A DNA stretch of 64,000 bases from Macrostomum lignano (GCA_002269645.1 NIVC01003919.1:1-64000); one strand, 5' to 3'. Shown: positions 49,403 to 60,695, counted from the stretch's first letter. The notes: generated from the sequence alone by a model not told the origin. Made by a program: numbers and translations.

Positions 49403-52400
49403 TCAGCTGGCGCTGGCCGCGGCTCCAGCCTTGACGGTTGGCACCGGCAGGTGCAGCAGTTCGCACAGGCGGTTGCGCACAGGTCTCACCTTCTCCAGGG
49501 CCTCCTCCCAGACCGTCTCCAGCAGCAGGCTGCTCACCTGAGATGAGAAAAAAGATGCAATGCACATACTTGACTAGGGAATCCCAATATGTACATACTT
49601 GACTAGGGAATCCCAATATGTACATACTTGACTAGGGAATCCCAATATGTACATACTTGACTAGGGAATCCCAATATGTACATACTTGACTAGGGAATCC
49701 CAATATGTACATACTTGACTAGGGAATCCCAATATGTACATACTTGACTAGGGAATCCCAATACGTACATACTTGATTAGGGAATCCCAATATGTACATA
49801 CTTGATTAGGGAATCCCAATATGTACATACTTTACTAGGGAATCCCAATATGTACATACTTGACTAGGGAATCCCAATACGTACATACTTGATTAGGGAA
49901 TCCCAATATGTACATACTTGACTAGGGAATCCCAATACGTACATACTTGATTAGGGAATCCCAATATGTACATACTTGACTAGGGAATCCCAATATGTAC
50001 ATACTTGACTAGGGAATCCCAATATGTACATACTTGACTAGGGAATCCCAATATGTACATACTTGACTAGGGAATCCCAATATGTACATACTTGACTAGG
50101 GAATCCCAATACGTACATACTTGATTAGGGAATCCCAATATGTACATACTTTACTAGGGAATACCCCGACAGTTACCTCATCGACAGTCTCCACTGGCAC
50201 AACCGAGTCAAACAGCAGCACAGCCTCGTACAGCTTGGAAGCGGCATTGCGCCTCACCACTGGGTACTTGTGGCCCAGATGCAGCATCAGCGGCTTCAGC
50301 GCCCGGTCTGGCGGAGGAAACTGCAGCGCCGCGGTCAGCGTGTCCTGAGCGATGAGCAGTTTGCTCCAGTTGGTGCAGCCGGCGACCTCGGCCTTGACCA
50401 GAGTCACCACGTTGTCCAGCAGTCGCTGGGCGTCCACCTCGTCGGCCAGCAGCAGCCTCTCGGAGATGAAGGCGTCACGCAGCAGGCAGGTGAGGCTGCG
50501 CATGGCGGGCACCGTCAGGCGGTCCTGCCTGGCCCGCTCCTCCAGCAGGCGGGCGTGCAGGCGCAACACCTCTAGGGGGAAGCCCGGCTCGGACTGCAGT
50601 GGAAGAGGAATTCATGGGGATTGCGCTGCCGGAAATGAGGACTGAGAAACTGAGGATCTGGGAGGTTGGCCCAGCAACTGCCACTCTGGGAGGCTGGCCC
50701 AGCAAATGAGGATCTGGGGAGGCCGGCTCCAGCAACTGAGGATCTGGGAGGCTGGCCCAGAAACTGAGGATCTGGGAGGCTGGCCCAGAAACTGAGGATC
50801 TGGGAGGATGTACATAAGTGAGGATCTGGGAATGGTGGCTCAGCAACTGAGGATCTGGGAGGCTGGCCTAGCAACTGAATATCTGGGAGGCTGGCCTAGC
50901 AACTGAAGATCTGGGAGGCTCTAGCAACTGAAGATCTGGGAGGCTGGCCTAGCAACTGAAGATCTGGGAGGCTGGCCTAGCAACTGAAGATCTGGAAGGC
51001 TGGCCTAGCAACTGAAGATCTGGAAGGCTGGCCTAGCAACTGAGGATCTGGGAGGCTGGCCCAGAAACTGAGGATCTGGGAGGCTGGCCCAGAAACTGAG
51101 GATCTGGGAGGATGTACATAAGTGAGGATCTGGGAATGGTGGCTCAGCAACTGAGGATCTGGGAGGCTGGCCTATCAACTGAAGATCTGGAGGGCTGGCC
51201 TAGCAACTGAAGATCTGGGAGGCTGGCCCAGCAACTGAGGATCTGGGAGGCTGGCCCAGCAACTGAAGATCTGGGAGGCTGGCCCAGCAACTGAGGATCT
51301 GGGAGGCTGGCCCAGCAACTGAGGATCTGGGAGGCTGGCCCAGCAACTGAGGATCTGGGAGGCTGGCCCAGCAACTGAGGATCTGGGAGGCTGGCCCAGC
51401 AACTGAGGATCTGGGAGGCTGGCCCAGCAGGATCTGGGGTCAGTGAACAAAGGCAGCTCGGCAGAACCTACCTTGGCACAGTCGGCCACCACAGTCAGCA
51501 GGGCATCGCTGGCGGCTCGCTCGGTGCTCTCTGTGAGGCCGCCCACGCTGACCACGAGGCCGGTGAGCAGGGCGTAGCGGAACCTGGCGTTCGGCACGCT
51601 GCCCAGCAGAGGCGCCAGCGCCGGGAAGGCATCGCTCGGGTTGGCCCAGTTGAAGGAGGCTGCAGCTCCGTCGCCGTCGCCGCCGGATGCCTCGGCCGCT
51701 GGCAGGCCGGCCAACATCTGGCGCAGCGCCGCAGGCGCCAGCCTTTCAGGCAGGGCGGCCACGGTTCGGCGAAGAGATTCGCCGGCGACTCGGCGCATCC
51801 GGTCGATTTTCTCTGCCGCCTGCTGCACCAGGCCGCAGAACAGGTCCTCCGCTAGGCCTGTGTGCGGTTTCATGTACTCAATATGCTACTTATAGCGACC
51901 AAAACTCAATACCTGCGCTGGTTATATGATAGCATATGATAGTACTTACAGTAGCATATACTAGCATTTACAGTAGTATATAATAGTACTTACAAAAACA
52001 TATGATAGTAATTACAGTAGGATATGAGAGTACTTACAGTAACATATGATAGTACTTACAGTAACATATGATAGTAATTACAGTAGGATATGATAGTACT
52101 TACAGTAACATATGATAGTAATTACAGTAGGATATGAGAGTACTTACAGTAACATATGATAGTACTTACAGTAACATATGATAGTAATTACAGTAACATA
52201 TGATAGTACTTACAGTAACATATGATAGTAATTACAGTAGGATATGATAGTACTTACAGTAACATATGATAGTAATTACAGTAGGATATGAGAGTACTTA
52301 CAGTAACATATGATAGTACTTACAGTAGTATACGATAGTACTTGCAATAGCATATACTAATACTTAAAGTAGAATAAACTTATATTTACACTAATTACTG

Positions 52401-55400
52401 CTTTCAGTAGCATACATCAACACTTACAGTAGCATGCACTACTATTCATAGTAGCACAAAACTACTTATAGCACTAAACATAAAGCATTTCGCTGTACCT
52501 GGCGACACCCGGTTAGCGATACGTGGCCCGGACAGGCACACCAGATCAGCTATGCCGCACAGGGCCGCCTCCCGGGTGAGGCTGCCCACATCGCCCCGCT
52601 GGTCCACCGTGTAGTCAGTCAGGCCAGCCAGCAGGCACCGGGCGGCCCTGTCAAACACTCCGAGCAGCTGCTTATCCTCAGCATCCGTAGCCGCTGCTGG
52701 CGATGAGGCGGAAGCTGAAGCGAATGACAGGCAGGCGGACACGAGGGCACGCAGAGCCGCCCGTCTGGCGTAGGCCCAGGTGCGTGTGTCCACTGCGGTT
52801 CGGGCGCTACTGCAGCTGGAGCAGTCGGCCAGGCAGTCGAGAACCCGGTCTAGCAGGGCCGCCTGCTCAGCTGAGCTGCCCGATGCTGATTGGTGGCGAT
52901 AGTATGAGCTGGGCAGCTGGCCCAGGGCTGAGCAGTGGCCAGCCCGGTGAGACTCCTGCGAGGCCGACAGCGCCTCGGTGCAGTACCTGTGCAGGTTGGG
53001 GCACGGCAGGCAGTGAGGGATTGACGGAGCTGAGCTAAGGCAAAATATGGGCCGGCTACTCAACACTTGACCAGCAAGACAGTCGTGAGTAATAAGCTTT
53101 GAAAGAAGTGATCAAACAGTGAAAGATCAATGAAGGTCAAGCAGTGAAAGATCAATGAAGGTCAAGCAGTGAAAGATCAATGAAGGTCAAGCAGTGAAAG
53201 ATCAATGAAGGTCAAGCAGTGAAAGATCAATGAAGGTCAAGCAGTGAAAGATCAATGAAGGTCAAGCAGTGAAAGATCAATGAAGGTCAAGCAGTGAAAG
53301 ATCAATGAAGGTCAAGCAGTGAAAGATCAATGAAGGTCAAGCAGTGAAAGATCAATGAAGGTCAAGCAGTGAAAGATCAATGAAGGTCAAGCAGTGAAAG
53401 ATCAATGAAGGTCAAGCAGTGAAAAATCAATGAAGGTCAAGCAGTGAAAAATCAATGAAGGTCAAGCAGTGAAAGATCAATGAAGGTCAAGCAGTGAAAG
53501 ATCAATGAAGGTCAAGCAGTGAAATATCAATGAAGGTCAAGCAGTGAAAGATCAATTTAAAGGTCAAGCATCAGGTTGAACAAGGGGAGCTCTGGATGAT
53601 TAATAAGTTATCAGCAGTGAATAATCAGAGTGAATTCCTCAAATATCAGCACCTGTCCAAGTAATGTACTAAAAAACTCACTTCTCAACTAGCCGCACAT
53701 CAACCGGTTCACCGTCCAGAAAAGGCATCAGCGCCTCGGCCGCCGCCTCCTGAACTGTGGCCTCCCGATGCCGCAGACAGTCGTCTAGGAAGGCCTGCCA
53801 AACGGAGCGCACTTCCGGGGGCACCGGAAACGGTCGGGCCCGGCAGAGCCGCTCCACTAGGGTGCAGCAGGCGCGGCGAATCAGTTCGCCAGCCAGGCCA
53901 CGCATGTAGCCAGCGTTGCTAAGGACGCTAATGAGGTTTAGAACTCCGTCGGCAAGACTGGGCTCGATTTTTCCGGATGCTTCTAAGCCGGCTGCGAAAT
54001 GAAGAGTATAAATGTGCATACTTAAAAGGTACGATTTATAAGTGCATATGCACTTTACGAGTACATGTGCTAAATCAGTGCAAGTGTACTTTAACAGTGC
54101 ATACGTACTTTAACAGTGAATATGTACTTTTAACAGTGCATGTGTACTTTATATAACAGCAAATGCCGCATGAAATTTCTAAATCTCACCGTCTCCAAGA
54201 GCGTAGAGACTGTGAGCTAATGCCAGCACGGCACCGTGTCGCAGGCAGAGGTCCAGTCCTTGAGCCGAGGCCACCAGCTGGGGCAGGTGGCTACCAAGGC
54301 AGTGCTCGGCATCCAGGGGCACCAGACTGCCAAAGGCTTCGGCGGCCAATTCCCTCAGAGCCGGATCCCAATGGCCGAGCTTGTGCTCAACCAGGTGAGC
54401 CAGCATCGGGCGCAGGTAGGTGACGCCGAACCCGGCCACGAACAGGCTCAGCCGGGTGAAGGCGTGACTGCGGTTGCCCACGGCAAAGTAGTCGCAGTTG
54501 GTGACGATTTCGATGCCGTTAGGGAAATTGCCCTGTCGGCCGACATGCTCTTGGAATGCGGCGGCAGCGGCGCGGCGCACGTTGATTTCCCGATCGAACA
54601 GAGAGGTAACAACCAGGGCGGTTGCTATGGAGACCACGTGAGGCTGCAGCACCGCCGGGTGGTAGGCGCGAGCGAAGGACCAGAGCACGTAGCAGGCGGC
54701 GTCGCGCACGTTGGAGCCGTGATTGCTTTCGCCCGAGCGTTCATCGTACACCTGGACAGGGGGGGGGGGGGCGAGTTAAGTTAAAAGGGATTTCTTGGGT
54801 CACTAAAGCCTTTCAAATCTCAGCAATACTAGATTAAAAAATATATATTGCTTGAAATTGCAATCCTAGATTGCTTTATCGAAATCTCACCCCTAGAATT
54901 CTAATCTCGCACTGGAAATGTCCAAAATCTCAACCTTAGAATTCAAATCTCGCAATGAAATACCATAAATCTCAGCACAAAACGACATGCCAAGCCCCCA
55001 TTCGCCAGCTCACCAGCGACTCCTTGACGGAGGCCAGCACAGCGGGCAGACGGTCAGGCAGCAGGAGGCCCCGCCTGGACAGCTCAGCGGTGGCCAGGCA
55101 GGCTCCATGCCAGGTCTCGTAGCTCTCCAGCCTGTTGAACTTCGACAGCAACGCGTCGACGACTTGGTCGGCCAGGCCGAGGGGCAGCCGGCCGGCCACG
55201 CGGCCGATGCCTTTGGCAGCTGACCAGCGCACAATGCTGTCCCGGTTGCTAAGGGCGCCCAGCAGGTGGTCCAACACCGTCTCCACCTCGGGGGCCACCT
55301 CAAACTGGCAGATTAGGGCGAATAACCGTGATCTTCTATCTTACCTGATCTATCTGAGCTATACCTGATCTACCTGAGCTAGACCTGATCTACCTGAGCT

Positions 55401-60672: not shown

Positions 60673-60695
60673 CTGAAGATGTGCAATGGGTGACT
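60673..60695 (-). promoter_or_regulatory. Candidate trans-splice acceptor of DNPH1
   Basis: cccattgcacatcttcAG|TCG AGC CAG CAG CTG AAG ATT TAC; an in-frame TGA lies 9 codons upstream with no ATG in between. Confidence 0.65.

Follow-up and report, generated by a model that had tools for sequence, protein, structure and literature searches.

Adjacent DNPH1 and TBCD genes of Macrostomum lignano probably take their start codons from the spliced leader

Within a window of 64,000 nucleotides from the flatworm Macrostomum lignano (contig NIVC01003919.1 of assembly GCA_002269645.1, Mlig_3_7; window coordinates equal record coordinates), two neighbouring genes on the minus strand, DNPH1 (60672-60223, upstream) and TBCD (58655-49403), each begin without a start codon directly at a splice acceptor. 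We consider it probable that they form a trans-spliced pair, derived from a single precursor, in which the methionine is borne by the spliced leader. For DNPH1 this reading is very likely to be correct. Both family assignments are borne out by Pfam, and the same DNPH1-to-TBCD order is present at two paralogous loci, L001 (NIVC01000052.1) and L002 (NIVC01000264.1), giving synteny in three loci. In the gene tables of all three, the two genes share their orientation and no gene on the opposite strand lies between them.

In the proposed mechanism, a single precursor RNA would probably be transcribed across DNPH1 and TBCD, which share their orientation. The leader of 35 nt, ending in TTATTGCATG, would be trans-spliced to the CAG acceptor ahead of each first coding exon, and the DNPH1 outron as well as the repeat-filled 1.57-kb spacer before TBCD would be discarded. 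The leader AUG, joined in phase 0, would then act as codon 1; ahead of the conserved N-terminal core, neither gene offers a usable in-frame ATG. Leader addition at both sites, translation from the leader AUG and a single promoter for both genes are thus presumed steps. The anatomy of the locus, the conservation in three loci and the agreement with gene models come from this analysis; the leader, the acceptor motif and the operon frequency are taken from the literature.

M. lignano has one spliced leader of 35 nt, CGGTCTCTTACTGCGAAGACTCAATTTATTGCATG, which ends in ...TTGCATG; its 3' part is the sequence given above and its last 12 nt are ATTTATTGCATG (PMC8629364). About 30% of the genes are trans-spliced and about 15% lie within operons, and the acceptor motif is [T/C]TNCAG (PMC8629364). 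Every reported flatworm leader ends in ATG and is able to provide the start codon (PMC12582326). For S. mansoni, more than 40 cDNAs that need the leader ATG have been described (Cheng et al. 2006, cited after PMC9851317), and the paper that presents the genomes of M. cliftonense and M. hystrix explicitly describes the terminal ATG of the leader as a start codon of translation, the reason given for leaving it untrimmed (PMC10468722). The premise of the original prediction, that flatworm leaders end in an AUG usable as initiator, is in line with both the M. lignano leader and this precedent. A leader RNA gene or relic was not found in the window at up to 3 mismatches, and leader suffixes of up to 9 nt occur there at chance level.

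On the minus strand the start of DNPH1 reads ...cccattgcacatcttCAG/TCG AGC CAG CAG CTG AAG ATT TAC TTT, where the slash marks the proposed junction and TCG stands at 60672. The gene consists of a single intronless coding exon (60223-60672) with 149 codons (SSQQLKIYFAGS...ARLKS) and a TGA at 60225-60223, and it contains no initiator ATG. Directly before it lies the proposed trans-splice acceptor (60673-60692), a pyrimidine-rich tract ending in CTTCAG with its AG at 60674-60673, which fits the published M. lignano trans-splice motif. The reading frame is closed upstream by an in-frame TGA at 60699-60697, 9 codons 5' of the exon, exactly as had been predicted. The accompanying claim that an upstream in-frame ATG is missing nearby stood for TBCD, where none occurs between the upstream TAA and the exon, and needed correction for DNPH1: an ATG at 60708-60706 is in the DNPH1 frame and opens a dead-end mini-ORF, ATG AGC CAG TGA (60697-60708, minus strand). 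As AGC CAG TGA follows immediately, this ATG was rejected as the DNPH1 start. The first in-frame ATG within the ORF is codon 50, deep in the Pfam domain.

The exon covers the N-terminal region expected for the family. DNPH1 matches PF05014 with 57.7 bits (cut-off 28.8), and position 1 of this profile, Nuc_deoxyrib_tr, aligns with residue 7. Among the 119 top homologues 117 begin with Met, which directly precedes KIYF in 86 of these 117. The profile start and the homologue starts together indicate that the exon holds the full N-terminus plus five extra residues, so that by its sequence it would lack nothing but the methionine. The catalytic G-x-G-Y-E motif is present as GVGYE, as it is in all 119 homologues.

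Precisely at the position of the usual homologue initiator (M-KIYF), M. lignano has a Leu codon, CTG (60660-60658). Judged from the alignment, this suggests that an ancestral ATG may have decayed once the leader AUG had taken over initiation. A further peculiarity of the protein is the motif GSIAAGR (60624-60644), in which all three M. lignano copies carry Ala and 115 of 118 homologues carry Arg (GSIRxGR). In rat Rcl/DNPH1 this Arg contacts the 5'-phosphate. Many of the top matches of DNPH1 are bacterial; horizontal transfer was considered and rejected, metazoan and bacterial homologues being equally distant at ~50-53% identity.

The public gene models agree with the proposed DNPH1 junction. 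The DNPH1 translation is 100% identical to one public protein and clusters at 98% identity with PAA86794.1 and PAA92418.1 ("BOX15_Mlig022662g4, partial [Macrostomum lignano]"). The three entries of this public-protein cluster are all genome-derived, and no transcript-derived protein with the leader Met (MSSQQ...) is among them. At all three loci the 5'-partial GenBank CDS begins with SSQQ, exactly at the base after the AG. The Mlig annotation was produced by splitting assembled transcriptional units into genes at peaks of leader reads and at poly(A) sites (PMC5730564). With 5' ends based on leader reads, a CDS that opens at the base after the AG provides strong indirect support for trans-splicing of DNPH1. 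For TBCD, UniProt entry A0A1I8GJ14 begins with AKSAAAA, exactly at the proposed acceptor, and A0A1I8JL86 begins two codons earlier. None of the five public models of the two genes carries a Met.

The start of TBCD on the minus strand reads ...ctgccctctcattCAG/GCC AAA TCG GCA, with GCC at 58655. The proposed acceptor is the tract ctgccctctcattCAG at 58656-58676, with its AG at 58657-58656; its CAG is kept in all three paralogous copies. Here too the frame is closed, by a TAA at 58701-58703 located 16 codons 5' of codon 1, a feature which adds to what had been described before. The first in-frame ATG within the gene is codon 33 (58557-58559, minus strand). It overlaps the conserved N-terminal motif of TBCD (GLGCALExF in other animals), and in an exhaustive HMMER search the alignment of many homologues began at query residues 6-25, corresponding to residues 3-16 of the homologue itself. 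Codon 33 was rejected as an unlikely start, since initiation inside the motif would cut into conserved N-terminal sequence. A protein search with TBCD exon 1 gave no match, probably owing to its low-complexity start, and one with a single conserved internal exon returned short fragments only and no M. lignano entry. Together with the profile alignment of DNPH1, the HMMER result upholds the view that both exons already cover the N-terminal region of their families.

Both acceptors were checked at 60672 and 58655 and do, as proposed, place a pyrimidine-rich AG directly before the coding sequence in phase 0. Among all AGs between -130 and +60 they have the highest upstream pyrimidine content, 0.70 for DNPH1 and 0.75 for TBCD over 20 nt. 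Phase 0 on its own is weak evidence, with a chance of 1 in 3 per gene, and in the neighbourhood of DNPH1 in-frame CAG codons yield several phase-0 AGs. It is the joint occurrence of a closed frame, a missing ATG, an N-terminus that is complete for the family and an acceptor unsurpassed in its surroundings that exceeds chance, and this combination is conserved in the three paralogous loci. The argument from two successive phase-0, ATG-less starts therefore holds for the features taken together, and the phase contributes little to it.

A difference between the paralogs bears directly on the DNPH1 junction. The three copies share 99% identity across a 218-nt segment around the start, and the junction reads ttttATG/TCGAGC in L001, ttttCAG/TCGAGC in L002 and cttCAG/TCGAGC in the window. 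In L001 (L001:9998-10000, corresponding to NIVC01000052.1 ~439161-439163, minus strand) an ATG thus replaces the CAG found at 60675-60673 of the window; two adjacent changes abolish the acceptor and create an ATG exactly where the leader AUG would be placed. This ATG is either a true cis start codon or the burn-in of RNA reads overhanging the junction by the last three bases of the leader. Mlig_3_7 was polished by Pilon using RNA-seq as well as DNA reads, and one trans-spliced gene of this assembly has been reported to contain a complete leader sequence at its 5' end (PMC8629364). Whichever its origin, it implies an mRNA or a gene with ATG-TCG-AGC, Met-Ser-Ser (Met-SSQQ). The cis-splice sites of TBCD, intact in the three copies, neither favour nor oppose a polishing artefact, because spliced aligners place cis junctions correctly and the comparison is uninformative on burn-in. 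It seems unlikely that the ATG is real and that a young DNPH1 paralog has swapped its leader-donated start for a genome-encoded one at the identical position. If it is, the swap could be due to a pair of neighbouring substitutions or to gene conversion by a cDNA that carried the leader, and L001 would capture trans-supplied and cis-encoded initiators in the act of interconverting. The CAG/ATG difference also raises a question of data quality, namely whether RNA-seq polishing has written leader bases into Mlig_3_7 at trans-splice sites.

Several observations count against a leader-initiated, co-transcribed pair, whose leader-exon junctions are predicted from DNA and annotation. The L001 ATG may be an assembly artefact of RNA-seq polishing. 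The TBCD acceptor hexamer, ATTCAG, agrees with the published motif at 5 of 6 positions and is mismatched at the first, and the window copy of TBCD is frameshifted as assembled. The 5'-partial GenBank models of TBCD, which lack a Met and are in this respect compatible with trans-splicing, start 15 nt (5 codons; P0175, L001) and 27 nt (9 codons; P0325, L002) downstream of the acceptor. The start in L001 would suit an mRNA that opens at the downstream GGCAG/CA (window 58642), on which the leader AUG would be out of frame. The distance between the genes, measured here from the DNPH1 stop to the TBCD acceptor, whereas the published operon distance starts at the poly(A) site, is 1567 bp, in agreement with the predicted ~1.57 kb; this exceeds the published 1-kb threshold, as do the 1102 bp that are left without the tandem arrays. 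The spacer contains neither AATAAA nor ATTAAA to mark the 3' end of DNPH1. Finally, no second copy of the foldback element in the spacer was found in the 124 kb examined.

The spacer length and the foldback element speak for the alternative that survives best, in which both genes are trans-spliced and receive a leader Met, yet are driven by separate promoters, their common unit name stemming from read-through or from chained overlapping reads. Only ~40% of the trans-spliced M. lignano genes have been assigned to operons (PMC8629364). Against separate promoters stands first of all the naming of the genes. In the Mlig annotation a common prefix is given to each transcriptional-unit cluster (PMC5730564). 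DNPH1 is Mlig022662g4 and TBCD is Mlig022662g5 in L001, and the TBCD fragment of the window is Mlig022662g3. For two genes unrelated in sequence, the common prefix implies at least one assembled transcriptional unit over both, and the numbers are consecutive.

An independent model on another assembly points in the same direction. UniProt A0A1I8FH57 (P0122), which stems from the older ML2 assembly, fuses DNPH1 with TBCD and likewise begins with SSQQ. It maps to ~59797-60227 of the window, where it skips the DNPH1 stop by a GT-AG intron and continues through a bridging exon that lies within the foldback element. This exon reads ...GGC CAG TGA, an in-frame stop, both in the window and in L002, so the fusion protein is not credible; the model nevertheless suggests continuous transcript evidence across DNPH1 and TBCD.

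The composition of the spacer decides how its length is to be read, for in M. lignano operon spacers are inflated by repeats, and the working criterion asks for less than 1 kb between genes after adjustment for repeats (PMC8629364). From the DNPH1 stop onward the spacer comprises 20 nt, the 679-bp foldback, a unique stretch of 364 bp and tandem arrays that total 465 bp. The foldback is a MITE-like element (59524-60202) that starts 20 nt after the DNPH1 stop and ends in TTAA/CAGTAG...CTACTG/TTAA. It has nested inverted arms, forms a predicted RNA hairpin of -328 kcal/mol (z = -13.4) and is present in all three paralogous loci, but it is not demonstrably a dispersed repeat. The non-repetitive part (59160-59523, 364 bp) is 97.5-99.5% identical between paralogs, and the tandem arrays at the 3' end (58695-59159), (TGTC)n with periods of 12, 31 and 76 bp, reach up to ~40 nt before the TBCD acceptor. 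The spacer shrinks to ~423 bp only if the tandem arrays and the foldback element are both removed, and we presume that the latter counts as a repeat. The predicted operon is thus backed by the shared strand, the common Mlig022662 prefix and the fused model, and falls under the 1-kb criterion only with the foldback counted as repeat. On balance we favour the operon with modest confidence and consider separate promoters unlikely, though the most serious of the alternatives. Long tandem arrays adjoin both putative outrons: directly upstream of that of DNPH1 lies a 32-bp array with 12.6 copies (60745-61150).

A second alternative concerns TBCD and builds on its GenBank starts. Two downstream AGs (GCAGCAG, 58639-58644, minus strand) would give exon starts at 58642 or 58639 that leave the leader AUG out of frame; the leader would then open a short upstream ORF, and TBCD would be translated from codon 33 or poorly translated. 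The L001 GenBank model begins at the first complete codon after GGCAG/CA, and the L002 model likewise begins 3' of 58655. However, the sequence upstream of these AGs is purine-rich, with pyrimidine fractions of 0.55 and 0.45 as compared to 0.75 at the 58655 site. Codon 33 lies inside the conserved motif, upstream of which many homologues still align, and A0A1I8GJ14 begins exactly at AKS. The L002 start has no AG directly before it, so that the downstream GenBank starts may simply be coverage-limited 5' ends, yet the exact TBCD acceptor stays uncertain. Use of the downstream AGs appears quite improbable to us, and the acceptor at 58655 is somewhat favoured. Supply of the methionine by the leader to both genes is accordingly well backed for DNPH1, where the models start at the acceptor and L001 has its ATG, and more weakly for TBCD.

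Still less probable is a cis-spliced, unannotated upstream exon that brings an ATG to the same acceptors. Flatworm acceptors are often common to cis- and trans-splicing (PMC12582326), and A0A1I8FH57 joins a spacer exon to the AKS acceptor. That exon contains the in-frame stop in the window and in L002, and all five public models are without Met. The gene tables of the three loci list no gene or exon in the 9-10 kb upstream of DNPH1, and the unit of the 32-bp array has no GT on the gene strand, hence no cis donor could come from the array. A cis donor upstream of either acceptor is thus presumably absent. Initiation of DNPH1 at the non-AUG codon CTG, which is aligned with the Met that precedes KIYF in most homologues, can practically be dismissed: its context is poor (C at -3, A at +4), scanning ribosomes on a trans-spliced mRNA would first meet the in-frame AUG 5 codons upstream, and the L001 ATG sits at the junction and not at the CTG.

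A nine-exon model of TBCD was built on L001, where the GT-AG boundaries allowed a single solution and the translation equalled P0175, and then transferred to the window. In the window the exons, all on the minus strand, are located at 58015-58655 (exon 1, ending in ...FLLAR), 56267-56683 (exon 2), 55014-55304 (exon 3), 54190-54751 (exon 4), 53682-53991 (exon 5), 52499-52986 (exon 6), 51472-51857 (exon 7), 50177-50593 (exon 8) and 49403-49537 (exon 9, ending in the TGA at 49405-49403). Every GT and AG is intact in the three copies. Exon 2 of the window lacks one C at ~56459/56460, reading CACA-CGAAGG where both paralogs have CACACCGAAGG, and this 1-nt deletion shifts the frame. The frameshift explains why GenBank holds only a 650-aa 3' fragment of TBCD for this contig, which starts inside exon 4 at 54406. 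Its cause is either an indel error of the long reads or a lesion of very recent date. With the missing base restored, the window copy encodes 1215 residues with 5 substitutions relative to L001. The paralog P0175 shows the expected architecture of ~1200 aa, with ARM_TBCD_2nd at 330.9 bits and TFCD_C at 125.5 bits.

Elsewhere in the window two mobile elements were recognized. An 860-codon ORF at 23689-26271 on the minus strand shows THAP, Tnp_P_element, TNP-like RNase H and GTP-binding domains and codes for a P-element/THAP9-like transposase. At 30252-33994 on the plus strand lie the ORFs of a Ty3/gypsy-type LTR retrotransposon, comprising Gag-protease, reverse transcriptase/RNase H and integrase.

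DNPH1-TBCD is an ordinary case of a mechanism that was described for flatworms as early as 2006, and the present M. lignano annotation already contains it implicitly. The locus changes nothing that is known about trans-splicing; its value is that of an annotation caveat and of a hint that polishing may have left an artefact. Both genes have been submitted as "partial" entries without Met, though their mature mRNAs probably code for the whole proteins. Software for gene finding that is blind to the leader AUG will call such genes truncated, fuse them, as in A0A1I8FH57, or start them at internal ATGs. The locus can serve as a clean teaching example and as a test case for ORF calling in Macrostomum that takes the spliced leader into account.

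The closest counterparts are the known flatworm mRNAs that start at a leader AUG. Common to both are a leader with a terminal AUG, a phase-0 acceptor and the lack of an AUG of the gene itself ahead of the conserved sequence, so that codon 1 would come from the leader. The present case differs in coming from a free-living macrostomid with another leader sequence, and in that junctions and starts are derived from DNA and annotation, and not from cDNA or translation assays. Nematodes have a specialised SL2, operon spacers of ~100 nt and leaders without a terminal AUG. The C. elegans SL1/SL2 operons are alike insofar as trans-splicing of a leader to the downstream gene resolves polycistronic precursors (general background and PMC12582326), but M. 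lignano has one leader and the spacer here measures 1.57 kb. With the operons described for M. lignano (Wudarski et al. 2017, PMC5730564; Ustyantsev and Berezikov 2021, PMC8629364) the pair shares the organism, the assembly, the common strand, the common prefix and a repeat-inflated spacer; it differs from those of PMC8629364 in that this spacer falls below 1 kb only with the foldback element counted as a repeat. In slORFs (PMC9851317) the leader likewise contributes the start codon. Those are mostly near-cognate NUG starts that open new or alternative frames in nematodes, Oikopleura and trypanosomes, whereas at DNPH1 and TBCD a canonical AUG would complete a normal conserved protein.

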